This document shows positions 30,614 through 63,947 of a DNA stretch of 64,000 nt, piece after piece (positions within the stretch are counted from its first letter, which is position 1; every line of letters starts with the position of its first letter). The stretch is from positions 41,974,001 through 42,038,000 of the forward strand of contig NC_043014.1 of NCBI RefSeq assembly GCF_006345805.1, in the 5' to 3' direction. The translations under genes were made by a program, and so were the position numbers. The stretch comes from Octopus sinensis. Its lineage: Eukaryota. The notes under the pieces were generated by a model, which did no database searches, had not been told where the DNA came from, and saw only the letters and a list, made by a program, of their open reading frames with translations.

Positions 30614-30687
30614 CGTCCCTGGGTGGACTTAAACCACCAACCTTTCGGTTAACAGCCGAACGCGCTAACCGATTGCGCCACAGAGAC
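30614..30687 (-). tRNA. trnN: tRNA-Asn(GTT), B-box variant (T loop TTTAAGT)
   Basis: 74-nt match; C56 changed to T, possibly impaired. Confidence 0.75.
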
Positions 30688-31185
30688 GACATGCTAACTA
30701 TTTTTTTTACATAGATATATATATATGTGTGTGTGTGTGTGTGTGTGTGTATCTTTGTGCCTGTCTGTGGTCCCACCGCAGCTTCACAACCGGTGTTGGT
30801 GTGTTTACATTCCCGTAAAAGAGTACGGTAGAATAAGTACTAGGCTTTAAAAAGTAAATACTAGGGTCAATATGTTCGACTAAAACAACGCGGTGCCCCA
30901 GCATGGCCACAATCATATGGCTGAAACAAATAAAAAACAAAAGATAAAAAAATTGAACTTGCCTAAGGAATACCCATTCAGCCAGATGCTGATTTGCTGG
31001 AAAGTATACTTCTGACTTTTTAATTAAGAGAAATATAAGAAATTAATTAATTATTGATTTCTGATTAGCGAACTTAGTAAACAAGTTAATATTTCCCGCG
31101 GCTTTTCATAAATCTGTTATTAAAAATCGGAAAAAAGAAATAAAAGAAATATATATATGTCTATGTAAAATCTAGCTAGCATGTC

Positions 31186-31259
31186 GTCTCTGTGGCGCAA
31201 TCGGTTAGCGCGTTCGGCTGTTAACCGAAAGGTTGGTGGTTCGAGTCCACCCAGGGACG
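31186..31259 (+). tRNA. trnN: tRNA-Asn(GTT)
   Basis: Intact cloverleaf, T loop TTCGAGT. Confidence 0.95.
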
Positions 31260-31377
31260 GGTTGTATTTGTTAAACTCCTGCTTTTATTTATGAGGATGT
31301 TTAACAATGTTCAGTAACTACTAATAAGACAATTTTAGGGTATTGATGTCAAGAAAGTCATATACTTTTATTAGTAA

Positions 31378-31736
31378 CTAGCAGTATCGCCCGGCGTTGC
31401 TCGGGTTTGTAAGGGAAATAACTATAAAGCATTTTTAGAGAGTTATAGCCAAAAAATGGAAAAAGAAAATGATGGTAAATTTTGTGGAGTTGCGTCCCCT
31501 AGACAGTCTGTGGTTTGTGTTTCTGATTCTCGACCCGATGTCGAATTTATCGATTTTTTTCAGAACTGGGGGAACTTTTCAAAATTTTCGCTGCGTTAGT
31601 TTTGAATTATGACATTGGGCTATGTGTGTGTCAAGTTTCATCAGAATCGGTTGAAAGCCGTGGTCAGGGTGAGGGTACAACCTGACAGACACACAGACAC
31701 ACACACAGACAAACTGCCGTTTATATAGAGAGAAGA
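31378..31736 (-). mobile_element. Non-autonomous Helitron-like element
   Basis: CTAG at 31378-81 with hairpin; inserted in tattagtaa|ttactgaa, a sequence present uninterrupted at 30548-64. Confidence 0.8.
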
Positions 31737-31846
31737 TTACTGAAGAATGTCAGTTACGGCCTGCAGAACCACAAACAATTGATTATCTAACAGCTTATCA
31801 GCAAGAAAAAAAAGAAATATATATTTATGTCAACAACTTTCATGTC

Positions 31847-31920
31847 GTCTCTGTGGCGCAATCGGTTAGCGCGTTCGGCTGTTAACCGAAAGGTTGGTGG
31901 TTCAAGCCCACCCAGGGACG
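31847..31920 (+). tRNA. trnN: tRNA-Asn(GTT)
   Basis: Intact; oligo-T downstream. Confidence 0.95.
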
Positions 31921-32132
31921 AGTGGTTTCTTTTTTTTTACCCTAGTATTTACTTTTTAAAGCCTAGTACTTATTCTACCGTACTCTTTTACGGGAACGTA
32001 AACACACCAACACCGGTTGTGAAGCTGCGGTGGGAACACAGACAGGCACAAAGATACACACACACACACACATACACACACACACACACACATACACACA
32101 TATGTCTATGTAAAAAAAATAGTTAGCATGTC

Positions 32133-32206
32133 GTCTCTGTGGCGCAATCGGTTAGCGCGTTCGGCTGTTAACCGAAAGGTTGGTGGTTCAAGCCCACCCA
32201 GGGACG
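32133..32206 (+). tRNA. trnN: tRNA-Asn(GTT)
   Basis: Intact; long oligo-T downstream. Confidence 0.95.
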
Positions 32207-32272
32207 ACTGATTTTTTTTTTTTTTTCTTTTAACCACTGTTTTTATTTATTCGGTAGTTTAATTCTTCGATT

Positions 32273-32552
32273 GTGGAGGCGTGTAGCATAGTGGTTAGGG
32301 TTTCAGCACCATGATCGTAGGATTGTGGTTTCGATTCGTGGACCGGGCGACGCGTTGTGTTCTTGAGCAAAACACTTCATTTCACGTTGCTCCAGTCCAC
32401 TCAGCTGGCAAAAATGAGTAATGCTGCGATGGACTGGCGTCCCGTCCAGGTGGGGAACACATACGCCGTAGAAACCGGGAAACCGGGCCTATGAGCCTGG
32501 CTAGGCTTTAAAAGGGCGCGTTTATTTTATTTTATTTTATTTTATTATTTCT
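32273..32552 (+). mobile_element. SINE family D with 15-bp TSD and (TTTTA)n tail
   Basis: TSD tttaattcttcgatt at 32258-72 and 32553-67. Confidence 0.9.
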
Positions 32553-33477
32553 TTTAATTCTTCGATTAACCTTAGTTTAATCAAGTTTCGGTCTTATATC
32601 ATTCTCTATTTCATTTTTTTTTCTCTCTGGACGTAATTATGTCTTTAAAATCAATAGATGCAGTTTTGTGAAATTGTTTTATCGGTCAGGTGTAAAAAGG
32701 GCTACACCCTTGATTTTAACAGACCCTCCAAGACGGTGAGGTTTCTGTCCTTCACGAGTATAAAGCATGAGATAAGGTAATTTCAGAGAGAGACCTATTT
32801 GAGGGAGTACGATCAAAGATATTCTGGTATTAACCATACCTTTTGAAAATCTAAAGGTACATTGTCAAGAAGTTCATCTTATTTTGAAATGGTTGGGTGA
32901 GAGATTTCACAGAATCTGTCTGCTATTTCCTGTCATCTCGAGTCACCACGCAGAAGCAACCTCGTTGGCATGTATTGGTGAATATGTCTTTGCTAATCAG
33001 TAATCATGTGTTTGTTCTGGGTTTTAGCAATCCGTATTTCGTAACTGGTTGACTTAATCTGCAGCCTTGTTTAACACCACCACCGCCCTCGTTGCCACTG
33101 CCTCCGCCGCCGCCGCCGCCGCACCCACCACCACAACCATTAGGACCTTAGATGTTTTTACTGGAGTTTCATTTATTGCAAGCATTTCAGTAAGGTCTCC
33201 GGCTTGGGAACATTTCCTTCCTTCTGCACAAAGACCTTCCCTCCTCGATTTAACCGAAGAAAGCAGAAAAATAAAGGACATAGCTATATGGTTAAGAAGG
33301 ACGCTTAACAACCACACTGTTTCGGGTTCGATTCTATGAAGTTCAAAGAAACTATGAAGACGCTCATTGTATATTCATGCTTGTGTGTGTACGTATGTGA
33401 GTCTATATATATAGACGCCATGATAGATCGTTAGTCACGACACACATTTTTTTCTCTCCTTGTTTTTTTCTGTGTCC

Positions 33478-61855: not shown

Positions 61856-61929
61856 GTCTCTGTGGCGCAATCGGTTAGCGCGTTCGGCTGTTAACCGAAA
61901 GGTTAGTGGTTCAAGTCCACTCAGGGACG
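61856..61929 (+). tRNA. trnN: tRNA-Asn(GTT), A49-U65 isodecoder
   Basis: T stem AGTGG/CCACT. Confidence 0.93.
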
Positions 61930-62242
61930 GACAGAAAATTTCTTTTTTTTTTACAAAATATTTAACTTTGTCAAATCTGTTTCCAATATAGATTTTTTTT
62001 GTCAATCTCGTCTTTGTTAGTATAAGATTACTTGAATGTAAAATTAAATGAAACATGAATAGAATTTTTTTTAATTTGTAGATTAATGATATAAGGGTAA
62101 CAGAAAAGATGGACAAATGTTATTTCTCCGAATTGATGCTGCCTTCGTCTCTTATAGAGATTTTCTTAAAGACCTAATTTGCTTGTTGAAATACCAAATT
62201 GTTTCGTATCAGACCGTCTGCAGATAAAACGGCATGCCATGT

Positions 62243-62316
62243 GTCTCTGTGGCGCAATCGGTTAGCGCGTTCGGCTGTTAACCGAAAGGTTGGTGGTTCA
62301 ATCCCACCCAGGGACG
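62243..62316 (+). tRNA. trnN: tRNA-Asn(GTT)
   Basis: Intact, T loop TTCAATC. Confidence 0.93.
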
Positions 62317-62650
62317 TTTATTTCATTTTTTTTTTCTTAGTTTTCATTTTGTCAAACCTGTTTTCAATATAGATTTCTGTCAATCTCGTCTTTGTAATTA
62401 TAAGATTAGTTAAATGTAATTTTTAAATAAAACACAGATATAAAATTGACTTTTAACTTTGTCAAATGTTTTCAATATAGATTAATGTCAATCTCGTCTT
62501 TTTTAATATAAGATTATTTAGATGCACAATTAAATAAAATATGGACAGAAACAAAAACAAAAATGATAGATTAATACTGTAAGGGTAAAATATAAGCATT
62601 ATTTGTCAGTTCTGATACAGAAGTCGTTTCTTATAGCGATTTTCTTAAAG

Positions 62651-62930
62651 TGCTAGTTTATCAGAAAATCAGTGATTGTGTGTCTCTTATTTTCTATATA
62701 TTGCAAACTGGGGGGAACTACTGCTATGACTAACAGACGAGTATCCATCACAGAAGATGACCATAATAATGTCGAAACCGATCGGTCTGATGGTTTCGAT
62801 AGCTGGAATGGTAAGGAGTTCTCTCCCCCATTTGCAATATATATCAAAAGCGAAGAGCACTGGGCAAATAGCTGGAGGAGACGTCCTCCTGAGGTTAAAA
62901 TAGCAGTATCGTCCGTTCTTAGAGTACAAT
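62651..62930 (+). mobile_element. Foreign ~280-bp hammerhead-bearing insertion in a tRNA spacer (right boundary approximate)
   Basis: Not homologous to the other spacers; contains a hammerhead motif and an outer inverted repeat. Confidence 0.6.
62745..62793 (+). ncRNA. Type I hammerhead motif, one substitution from canonical (U4 replaced by A)
   Basis: CCATCA CAGAAGA T GAC-CATAATAAT-GTC GAA ACCGATCGGT C TGATGG: 6-bp helix I, 10-nt palindromic helix III, GUC triplet (cut after 62787). Confidence 0.7.
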
Positions 62931-63131
62931 CATGTATAGACGGAGATCAACATTACTTCTCAGTATTGACACTGCTTTCGACTCTTAAAGAGATTTGCTT
63001 GTTGAAATACTAAATTGTCTCGCGTCAAACCCTTATTTATCAATTTCTGTGTTCCATACTTAGCGTGGCATATTAAAGCTCTCACCACTTCACGAAATGA
63101 AACAGTCTGCAGGTAAGCTTGATCATCAGCT

Positions 63132-63205
63132 GTCTCTGTGGCGCAATCGGTTAGCGCGTTCGGCTGTTAATCGAAAGGTTGGTGGTTCGAATCCACCCAG
63201 GGACG
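63132..63205 (+). tRNA. trnN: tRNA-Asn(GTT), G31-U39 variant
   Basis: Stems intact with one wobble pair. Confidence 0.88.
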
Positions 63206-63458
63206 AGCGAATATCTTCCTTTTCTTTTTACAAAACAATTAACTTTGTCAAATCTGTTTTTATTTAAAAATTTTTTTTTCTCAATCCCGTCTCCTATAGA
63301 GATTTTCTTAAAGACCTAATTTGCTTGTTGAAATACCAAATTGTTTCGTATCAGACTCGTACTTATCATTTTCAGCCATCCATACTTACCGTAACCTACT
63401 TAAAGCTTTCACTGCTTTAGAAAATAAAATCGTCTGCAGATAATACGGCATGCCATGT

Positions 63459-63532
63459 GTCTCTGTGGCGCAATCGGTTAGCGCATTCGGTTGTTAACCA
63501 AAATGTTGGTGGTTCAAGCCCATCCAGGGACG
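63459..63532 (+). pseudogene. trnN: Degenerate tRNA-Asn (C29:A41 mismatch and others)
   Basis: Six substitutions; GTT anticodon retained. Confidence 0.7.
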
Positions 63533-63873
63533 TTTATTTCATTTTTTTTCTTAGTTTTCATTTTGTCGAACCTGTTTTCAATATAGATTTGTCAACCTCG
63601 TCTTTGTAATTATAAGATTAGTTAAATGAAATCTTTAAGTAAAACACAGATATAAATTTAAAAGAATGAGAAACAAATGTTATTTCTCAGTATAGATATT
63701 GCTTTCGTCTCGTATAGAGATTTTCTAAACGAGCTAATTTGTTTGTTGAAACCCAAATTCTTTCGTATCAAACTCGCATTTATCGTTTTCAGTCTTCCAT
63801 ACTGACAATGGCTTTCTCAAATCTTTCACTGCTTTACGAATTGAAAGTCTCCGCAAACAAACGTGTCCCAGTT

Positions 63874-63947
63874 GTCTCTGTGACGCAATCGGTTAGCGCG
63901 TTCGGTTTTTAACCGAAAGGCTGGTGGTTCAAGCCCACCCAGGGTCG
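63874..63947 (+). pseudogene. tRNA-Asn-derived copy with TTT (Lys) anticodon
   Basis: Anticodon arm TTCGG-TTTTTAA-CCGAA; also G10A and a T2:T71 mismatch. Confidence 0.75.

Follow-up and report, generated by a model that had tools for sequence, protein, structure and literature searches.

What is a dense array of copies of one tRNA gene doing in an octopus genome, and how did it arise? The question is raised by a 64,000-nucleotide stretch of Octopus sinensis DNA (NCBI RefSeq assembly GCF_006345805.1, contig NC_043014.1, positions 41,974,001 to 42,038,000 of the forward strand). We refer to the whole stretch as the window and number all positions from its first letter. Between 30614 and 63947 the window carries 39 copies of tRNA-Asn(GTT) or of its decayed derivatives. 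From the results below it seems likely that this is a real homogeneous nuclear tRNA-Asn(GTT) cluster in an octopod, which grew in stages at the DNA level and evolves by birth-and-death, and whose intact copies are probably competent for transcription by RNA polymerase III (Pol III).

Copy number and identity of the tRNA genes

ARAGORN reported 37 tRNAs over the window, and Rfam RF00005 gave 38 matches at or above the gathering score of 29 (34.5-73.4 bits), 36 of which covered the full model. Comparison of the commonest copy with the window by blastn recovered a 39th copy, truncated at the 5' end and located at 42449-42503 on the minus strand, which corresponds to positions 20-74 of the gene and is 100% identical. 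All 39 copies lie within 30614-63947, 30 on the plus and nine on the minus strand, and no tRNA gene was detected in 1-30613 by ARAGORN, Rfam RF00005 or a permissive Rfam scan. In the whole window the permissive scan revealed no other RNA family, the other matches being below threshold and falling on TA/TG microsatellites. The density of the array averages one copy per 855 bp, with tRNA bodies making up 8.6% of its span.

Every copy is either a tRNA-Asn(GTT) or a decayed Asn copy. The GTT anticodon is present in 32 of the 33 copies of 74 nt, the remaining one having TTT; five further copies contain insertions or deletions (indels) and one is truncated. A preliminary description of this locus had claimed 39 copies in 33 kb, all derived from Asn and with no other isotype. 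Both claims hold, the first as 38 Rfam matches plus one truncated copy found by blastn, and the second because the lone 'Lys' call is a mutated Asn body.

The gap between neighbouring copies is shorter than 1000 nt in 27 of 38 cases and 1.1-2.3 kb in the other 11. Strict application of a <1000-nt rule splits the array into 12 sub-clusters of one to six genes, separated by spacers of 1.1-2.3 kb; these sub-clusters belong to a single duplicated structure. Only 53 nt separate the end of the last copy from the window end, and since these form a normal C-type trailer (unit types are defined below), the window end cuts a unit in mid-course.

Cloverleaf, promoter and terminator features

To be scored as intact, a copy had to be 74 nt long, to have all 21 stem pairs as Watson-Crick or G-U, to carry the anticodon GTT and to retain the invariant bases T8, A14, G18, G19, T33, R37, T54, T55, C56, R57, A58 and C61. 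In the register of a 74-nt copy, the acceptor stem occupies 1-7/67-73, the D stem 10-13/23-26, the anticodon stem 28-32/40-44 with the anticodon at 35-37, and the T stem 50-54/62-66. By these criteria 22 of 38 copies are intact, representing 11 distinct isodecoders. The other 16 have indels (five copies), a stem mispair or a changed invariant T-loop base (10) or an altered anticodon (one), and overall 17 of 39 copies are defective or truncated.

Variation among the 22 intact copies is confined to D-loop positions 16/17, variable-loop position 47, T-loop positions 57/59/60, a G9A change, one G-U pair and the pair 50:66. The last of these represents a compensatory change from G50:C66 to A:T, found in four intact D-type copies. 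We judged the cloverleaf by covariance-model score and explicit pair counts, in place of a single-sequence fold by ViennaRNA. When the 22 distinct 74-nt sequences were aligned, pairing in register was observed in 97.6% of cells, compared with 23-58% when the 3' partner was slid, and 50:66 (G:C to A:U) was the only pair altered on both sides.

The A-box string TGGCGCAANCGG occurs 34 times, and the B box takes the form GGTTCGANNCC in 11 copies and GGTTCAANNCC in 24, giving 35 B-box matches in 33 kb. A run of at least four T residues lies within 25 nt downstream of 38 of the 39 copies, against a background of 18%, and runs of at least six are found downstream of 19 of the 39 (background 3.5%). 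Behind the 22 intact copies the terminators are located at +1 to +24. No encoded CCA was found after any of the copies. The earlier claims that about 22 copies are intact, that A and B boxes are present and that an oligo-T terminator usually follows are all in agreement with these counts.

Cloverleaves, terminators, A and B boxes and the lack of CCA are the sequence hallmarks of nuclear Pol III tRNA genes. Because the 22 intact copies combine A and B boxes, canonical cloverleaves and terminators with the absence of an encoded CCA, they are probably Pol III-competent and would add to the supply of tRNA-Asn, perhaps in certain tissues or stages only. In most animals tRNA-Asn(GTT) is the sole isoacceptor for the AAU and AAC codons.

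Relationship of the main isodecoder to the canonical tRNA-Asn

We compared the main copy with the 3' 25-mer of a human AsnGTT fragment printed in PMC11476591. The two are one T-loop base apart, with TTCAAGCCC in the octopus copy and TTCGAGCCC in the human sequence. The exact human 25-mer is in no window copy, and the canonical TTCGAGCCC T-arm is in no intact window copy. The match to the vertebrate tRNA-Asn(GTT) that the preliminary description had proposed therefore stands as near-identity and fails as an exact match. On our reading the near-identity reflects deep conservation of the tRNA. The vertebrate origin that the match seemed to imply is not supported: the interspersed repeats of the window are Octopus-type (see below), and a probe for the Danio DANA short interspersed element (SINE) had no match in the window. 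A zebrafish source, which GC content, microsatellites and the published 825 copies of Asn-GTT had suggested, was rejected on these two grounds.

The canonical form was found as a full 74-mer with TTCGAGCCC in the ENA contig L002 (ERZ25067582, 738 kb), which has two identical tRNA-Asn genes at 10204-10277 and 13532-13605, 3.3 kb apart. This contig and a second ENA locus, L003, have tRNA-Asn genes as one or two solitary copies, not as an array, and L002 has only microsatellites in common with the window. A literature string search with the tRNA sequences returned only the human 3' fragment, and in a protein search for the unit in other assemblies, made with a tRNA-spanning open reading frame (ORF), the matches covered the translated tRNA and poly-T but not the flanks.

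The array is a nested higher-order repeat

Self-comparison of the window showed that the array is a nested higher-order repeat, composed of monomers, trimers, 4.25-kb and 10.9-kb units and an inverted block. Six unit types, A to F, can be distinguished from their flanks, and the building blocks are a C-D-E trimer and an A-B-A triplet. The isodecoder tracks the unit type: A units have C16 with TTCGAAT, C units have TTCAAGT or TTCAAGC, D units have A50:T66, and B and E units have the main form.

Sequence identity rises with unit size. Monomers of about 450 bp, located within 47.9-50.4 kb (Tandem Repeats Finder period 463, 80% matches), are 76-81% identical to each other, and adjacent C-D-E trimers of 1.46 kb, as at 47918-49388, are approximately 92.5% identical. 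A 4.25-kb unit comprising two C-D-E trimers and a spacer (47787-51246) has a 94% identical partner at 52036-55488. In the 10.9-kb duplication, the left copy (43606-48452) is 96.3% identical to the right copy (54529-59381) and both ends are on tRNA bodies. All of these lie on the plus strand. The inverted A-B block occupies 32532-42503 on the minus strand with a period of 2.07-2.47 kb; its units are 91-96% identical to each other and 88-91% identical to the plus-strand A-B-A unit at 45.2-46.1 kb. The unit types otherwise have unrelated flanks, and near-identical block pairs were not found.

Although the spacers have otherwise diverged, two partly conserved upstream blocks are common to all types: CAAAT-AA-TAC-TTG-TGA, roughly between -35 and -17, and TCAGYT, which occupies -6 to -1. 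As far as can be judged from the alignments they are traces of the common descent of all unit types, and they may represent an upstream or start-site element for Pol III, or may just be decaying slowly. A further relic is provided by a 26-nt tRNA 5' fragment (positions 3-28) at 34686-34711 on the plus strand, which lies in the opposite orientation about 105 nt upstream of an A-type copy. It recurs at 37153-37178 and 39207-39232, head-to-head with the A-type copies of the minus-strand block, and is almost erased in the plus-strand A units. We interpret these fragments as remnants of a partial copy in inverted orientation, carried along when the unit was duplicated. A spacer of the minus-strand block also contains a perfect 27-bp tandem repeat, ACCGCCGCCACCACCACTATCACCACC, present in 2.6 copies at 40347-40417.

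Rearrangements are anchored on tRNA bodies

Partner homology between units switches exactly at, or inside, tRNA bodies. The clearest instance is the copy at 59305, in which the 150 nt upstream are of type D (86-93%) and the 150 nt downstream are of type A (94-96%), with no cross-similarity. Its body combines the D-like T16 with the A-like G50:C66 and TTCGAAT, and this mixture places a crossover between positions 17 and 49. The copy at 43606 has its downstream sequence in common with the E-type copy 50301 (91%) but not its upstream sequence (2%), whereas the E-type copies 48841 and 53080 have their upstream sequences in common with 50301 and 54529 (91-97%) but not their downstream sequences (5-6%). 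Moreover, the left edge of the 10.9-kb duplication coincides with the start of a tRNA, and its right edge lies three bases beyond a tRNA end. Since the homology switches at tRNA bodies, we conclude from these junctions that the near-identical 74-bp bodies anchored the rearrangements. Internal deletion has also taken place: in the truncated copy at 42449-42503 it removed positions 1-19 and about 55 bp of upstream sequence.

A motif of a SINE-like repeat is found at matching sites in both copies of the 10.9-kb duplication (44735/55680 and 46683/57622), which points to copying at the DNA level. The self-comparison shows staged growth from one ancestral unit of about 450 bp, which comprised an upstream region of about 70 bp, the 74-bp gene and an oligo-T terminator. 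Multiplication proceeded from monomers to 1.46-kb C-D-E trimers, then to the 4.25-kb unit and to the 10.9-kb unit, together with inversion of the A-B block. The exchanges may have occurred by unequal homologous recombination or by template switching at stalled replication forks; tRNA genes are described as replication-fork barriers and genome organisers in work cited in PMC9679248.

Divergence of bodies and spacers

To gain insight into the mode of evolution we compared divergence in tRNA bodies and in the surrounding sequence. In the old monomers C, D and E the bodies have diverged by 1.4-5.4%, compared with 21-32% in the spacers (Fisher p 2e-4 to 1e-9). When all pairs are considered, bodies remain 93-94% identical even where the 120-nt flanks drop to 39-63%, random sequence giving approximately 30% with the same aligner. 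Young duplicates gave a different result, with bodies 3.6% and the rest 4.3% diverged (53/1477 versus 496/11669, p=0.27). For CpG the observed/expected ratio was 1.03 in the spacers of the array, compared with 0.87 in the left half of the window, and a ratio of about 1.0 gives no sign of methylation-driven decay. With the repeat-age calibration of PMC13282606, the large units would be roughly 4-10 My old and the monomers 34-57 My.

The simplest reading of these comparisons is that the array is under birth-and-death, in which the family as a whole would keep its function and single recent copies would decay. Single copies have gathered damage as fast as their flanks from the last duplications onwards, and in the long term only structure-preserving changes survive in the bodies while spacers decay. 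A tRNA-containing satellite under birth-and-death was among the possibilities raised in the preliminary description, beside dosage amplification for oogenesis or Asn-rich products and a TFIIIC-dense boundary, and the satellite is favoured by the nested repeat, the 17 defective or truncated copies, the conservation of bodies in old monomers and the lack of extra constraint in young duplicates. Body-restricted gene conversion is a possible alternative; the fact that isodecoders track unit types speaks against homogenisation on a wide scale.

Several points weigh against this interpretation. The presence of 17 dead copies among 39, and the lack of measurable constraint in young duplicates, also fit a largely silent array. 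Transcription-associated mutation could raise the rate of change in active tRNA genes and so mask selection in the young duplicates. The minimum-energy fold computed with ViennaRNA recovered the acceptor and T arms but missed the D and anticodon arms, although folds of this kind that miss arms are common for unmodified tRNA sequences. Finally, the assembly has a 100-N gap at 28463-28562, 2 kb to the left of the first copy, which interrupts the sequence join between the tRNA-free half and the array.

Alternative explanations

The most substantial alternative is that the array is a largely silent tRNA-gene (tDNA) satellite, spread by neutral unequal crossing-over and held in repressed chromatin with little or no tRNA output. 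It overlaps with the birth-and-death interpretation, from which it differs in present activity only, and we regard it as unlikely but far from negligible. In addition to the defective copies and the equal pace of bodies and flanks in young duplicates, it draws on the absence of the canonical TTCGAGCCC from intact copies, a form that may sit elsewhere in the genome, and on the precedents set by the heavily methylated clusters on zebrafish chromosome 4 and by the Ser/Tyr cluster that is silenced in Arabidopsis. Against it stand the conservation of old bodies beside strongly diverged spacers, with changes restricted to tolerated sites and one compensatory pair, the retention of terminators behind 38 of 39 copies, and a CpG ratio of the spacers that gives no sign of decay by methylation. 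Alternatively, the main role of the copies might be architectural: their dense TFIIIC/Pol III sites would form a barrier to replication forks or a boundary in chromatin, and tRNA output would be incidental. The 35 B-box matches, the fork-barrier and genome-organiser work cited in PMC9679248 and the location of breakpoints at tRNA bodies, consistent with fork stalling, are in its favour. We nevertheless consider it improbable, as no flanking genes in need of separation were seen in the window and it is the entire cloverleaf that is conserved, with the anticodon and acceptor stems, rather than the A and B boxes alone.

An assembly error that inflated the copy number, through duplicated haplotypes or wrongly assembled repeats, appears very improbable. 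Repeat arrays are error-prone in assemblies, and the 100-N gap lies close to the array; but the 38 copies comprise 27 distinct sequences, the unit types have unrelated flanks with no near-identical block pair, and the nested duplicates differ by 3-7% compared with the 1.22% heterozygosity reported for Octopus vulgaris. Least credible of the explanations considered is an origin from mobile elements, either a tRNA-derived SINE or a non-autonomous retrotransposon of the Helenus type with long terminal repeats (LTRs; a terminal-repeat retrotransposon in miniature, TRIM), the copies then not being cellular genes. Helenus elements, which can occur as tandem arrays, raise the number counted for single tRNA types in fungi, fish and bivalves (PMC10886601); SINEs are abundant in octopus genomes, with 11.6% in O. 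vulgaris, and SINE-like repeats are present in the array spacers. Yet the copies are full-length canonical tRNAs whose adjoining terminators would end a Pol III transcript before the body of any element. A search confined to sites for tRNA-Asn found no primer-binding site (PBS) complementary to its 3' end, no CCA is encoded, and LTR termini and target-site duplications were searched for less than exhaustively. Furthermore, no copy is present outside the array in the 30 kb of adjacent DNA, multi-kb blocks have been duplicated with the same SINE insertions at matching positions, and the Helenus element reported from molluscs is bivalve and derived from tRNA-Lys.

If the intact copies are active, their use might be restricted. 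By analogy with a proposal for zebrafish, there could be a two-tier tRNA-Asn system in which array isodecoders are stage- or tissue-specific, for example in oocytes or eggs, and the canonical TTCGAGCCC form is supplied by solitary genes elsewhere; we consider this rather doubtful. The array-specific isodecoders in question are those with TTCAAGC, with C16 and TTCGAAU, and with A50:U66 and TTCAAGU. Were such a system real, Asn-GTT would have been amplified independently in a fish and a mollusc, suggesting a shared pressure on a single-isoacceptor tRNA. tRNA-Asn is a queuosine-bearing tRNA.

The individual copies

Numbered from left to right, copy 1 (30614-30687, minus strand, type F) is defective through a change of the invariant T-loop C56 to T. 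It is followed on the plus strand by three intact copies: copy 2 (31186-31259, type F, T-loop TTCGAGT), copy 3 (31847-31920, F-like, main isodecoder) and copy 4 (32133-32206, type F, main isodecoder, T15 terminator).

The copies of the inverted A-B block are on the minus strand. Among those of type A, copy 5 (34507-34580) is defective owing to a C-A mispair at acceptor pair 6:68, copy 7 (36974-37047) is intact, copy 9 (39030-39101) has two deletions that leave a defective body of 72 nt, and copy 11 (41836-41909) is intact, with C16, the T-loop TTCGAAT and a perfect B box, GGTTCGAATCC. The B-type copies are damaged: copy 6 (35136-35211) by indels (ARAGORN anticodon 'ggtt', Rfam score 34.5 bits), copy 8 (37597-37669) by a 1-nt deletion that leaves 73 nt, and copy 10 (39657-39730) by a C-A mispair at acceptor pair 3:71. 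Copy 12 (42449-42503) is the 5'-truncated one, its internal deletion fusing the body to a distal upstream motif.

All later copies are on the plus strand. Copy 13 (43606-43679), an intact main isodecoder in a chimeric unit, marks the left boundary of the 10.9-kb duplication; its upstream flank is 60% type C-like and its downstream flank 91% like that of the type E copy 50301. The A-B-A triplet that follows is intact throughout and consists of copy 14 (45065-45138, type A), which has A9 and the best Rfam score (73.4 bits), copy 15 (45286-45359, type B, main isodecoder) and copy 16 (45886-45959, type A).

In the C-D-E region, the C-type copies are copy 17 (47931-48004, intact, T-loop TTCAAGT), copy 20 (49402-49475, intact, D-loop A17), copy 23 (52180-52253, defective, invariant T55 changed to G) and copy 26 (53640-53712, defective, 73 nt, with a deletion and substitutions). 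The D-type copies 18 (48376-48449), 21 (49838-49911) and 27 (54064-54137) are intact with the compensatory T-stem pair A50:T66, copy 18 forming the right boundary of the 10.9-kb duplication; copy 24 (52613-52687, type D) is defective through indels and gives a partial Rfam match at 52617-52681 (39.3 bits). Of type E, copies 19 (48841-48914) and 25 (53080-53153) are intact main isodecoders, while copy 22 (50301-50374) is defective at T-stem pair 53:63 (G-A) and copy 28 (54529-54602) at pairs 3:71 and 50:66.

Further to the right, the second triplet contains copy 29 (56005-56078, type A, defective, C-A at D-stem pair 13:23), copy 30 (56226-56299, type B, defective, C-C at T-stem pair 53:63) and copy 31 (56828-56901, type A, intact). 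Copy 32 (58869-58942, type C) is intact, and copy 33 (59305-59378), the recombinant D/A unit, is defective at 3:71 (A-G). Three intact copies follow, copy 34 (61270-61343, type C, T17), copy 35 (61856-61929, type D, A50:T66) and copy 36 (62243-62316, type E, T60). Copy 37 (63132-63205) has D-like flanks (65-76%) and an A-type T-loop and is intact with a G-U pair at 32:40. Copy 38 (63459-63532, type E) is defective, with a C-A mispair at anticodon-stem pair 30:42 and other changes, and copy 39 (63874-63947, type C), whose unit is cut by the window end, is dead. In this last copy the change of GTT to TTT creates an internal T5 run, two stem pairs are mispaired, and ARAGORN labels it tRNA-Lys(TTT).

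Interspersed repeats and the tRNA-free half

At 44387-44781 lies a SINE-like repeat whose head resembles a B box, whose core is a TA/TG microsatellite and whose tail, CAGCATGGCCGCAGTCAAATGACTGAAAC, is conserved. Nine are present in the window where none would be expected, with motif matches at 19317, 26482, 44735, 46683, 50589 (minus strand), 51717, 55680, 57622 and 60103; a literature search with strings from the repeat gave no match. The database contains just one strong relative of an ORF that spans the repeat, namely a gene model of O. vulgaris (E 2e-44, 74% identity), which is probably a spurious call over the SINE-like repeat. The O. vulgaris locus of that gene model (OX597836.1, GCA_951406725.2) has several repeat families in common with the window, at 85-91% identity in 1434 high-scoring segment pairs. 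A second, independent ORF, at 24606-24905 on the plus strand (100 aa), resembles the C-terminal tail of a retroelement protein and has more than 200 relatives. The best named relatives are from O. bimaculoides (86% and 69%), other named taxa reaching at most 58%, and the frame is a degraded transposable element fragment. Taken together, and judged by their closest relatives, the interspersed repeats of the window are Octopus-type.

A second repeat family begins at the left edge of the window as a 184-bp tandem array (53-797, four copies, 96% matches). It recurs at 29084-29263 and 42602-42781 as an inverted pair, 93% identical, that flanks the left part of the array, and at 42.6-42.85 kb it runs into a segment resembling a tRNA-derived SINE that ends in GCCAGCTCGCCGCCTT. 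Another tandem repeat, at 20049-20988, shows overlapping periods of 174 and 151 bp in about three to four copies with 93% matches.

The region 1-30613 is dense in microsatellites of TA, TG, TCTA, GAT and AAGA, for example at 2002-2341, 3347-3728, 8412-8819, 9714-10034, 12587-12855, 18920-19143 and 22328-22664. These give rise to long spurious ORFs and to many sub-threshold Rfam matches to 'mir-297' and 'mir-466'. No protein-coding genes were detected in 1-30613, and a Pfam search with the ten longest ORFs of the window found nothing real, the ORFs being translated microsatellites and repeats.

Comparison with known systems

Homogeneous and heterogeneous tDNA clusters with rapid turnover and many pseudogenes are known across eukaryotes from a survey that included no mollusc and in which most clusters were small (Bermudez-Santana et al. 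2010, PMC2888827). In its homogeneous clusters, neighbouring genes share their isoacceptor family, are separated by less than 1000 nt and are mostly parallel. The octopus array likewise contains one isoacceptor family, but has 39 copies in 33 kb, a nested higher-order repeat and spacers of 1.1-2.3 kb. In zebrafish, Asn-GTT is amplified more than any other tRNA type, the Zv9 assembly having up to 825 identical copies (10.1101/869651); clustered copies have been linked there to tRNAs that are deposited maternally, and solitary ones to later stages (PMC11417395). The two systems are alike in very high clustered copy number and many isodecoders. However, the zebrafish clusters are mostly heterogeneous, for example with K-N and K-S pairs (PMC2888827), whereas the octopus array has a single isotype; and those on chromosome 4 show near-complete CpG methylation (PMC11574265), in contrast to the CpG ratio of about 1.0 in the octopus spacers.

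How an amplified array can be used conditionally is exemplified by the Arabidopsis tRNA-Ser/Tyr (SYY) tandem cluster, which is heterochromatic and, though silent in the majority of tissues, becomes active again in a specific one (PMC12308677). It differs in being a plant cluster with a two-isotype unit and documented silencing. Helenus TRIMs and tRNA-derived SINEs can raise a single tRNA-like sequence to hundreds of copies, in bivalves among others and possibly in tandem arrays, but Helenus copies are mostly unable to fold as tRNAs and lie inside LTRs with a PBS and a polypurine tract (PMC10886601). The octopus copies, by contrast, are canonical, are followed by terminators, occur in one array only and have been copied as multi-kb DNA blocks. 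Among molluscs, bivalves show lineage-specific excess of single tRNA types, as here, but the copies are dispersed evenly through the genome and non-Asn: Ostrea edulis has 907 copies of Ser-AGA, and in Mercenaria the expanded types are Thr and Ala, with amino-acid usage giving no explanation (PMC9679248). The same work counted 21, 21 and 72 tRNA-Asn genes in three whole bivalve genomes, so that the 39 copies of this one window exceed or equal the whole-genome counts in two of the three.

How nuclear tRNA genes are organised in molluscs has hardly been described. According to PMC10886601, Aplysia is the sole mollusc in GtRNAdb; the octopus genome literature we examined mentions nuclear tRNAs as an annotation step only, and in the literature searched we found no description of a tRNA array in cephalopods, a search for cephalopod tRNAs returning mitogenome papers only. 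For annotation, the 'tRNA-Lys' call at the window end should be read as a dead Asn copy, the assumption of a vertebrate origin should be dropped, and tRNA adaptation indices based on gene copy number would be misleading for octopus.

Multiplication of tRNA-Asn by segmental or tandem duplication is also known from the tRNA-Asn-rich segmental duplications of human 1q21 and from the 3.18-kb tandem tRNA repeat of Xenopus. Both loci mix several isotypes; the human one is of lower density and that of Xenopus has a fixed eight-gene unit. Overall, a large single-isotype tRNA-Asn array in a cephalopod appears to be a further case of the known homogeneous tDNA clusters and will not surprise a specialist. 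It is at the same time an unusually legible record of body-anchored recombination, and it offers a compact case in which tRNA genes would drive local rearrangement and in which selection on total dosage would act alongside the decay of single copies.

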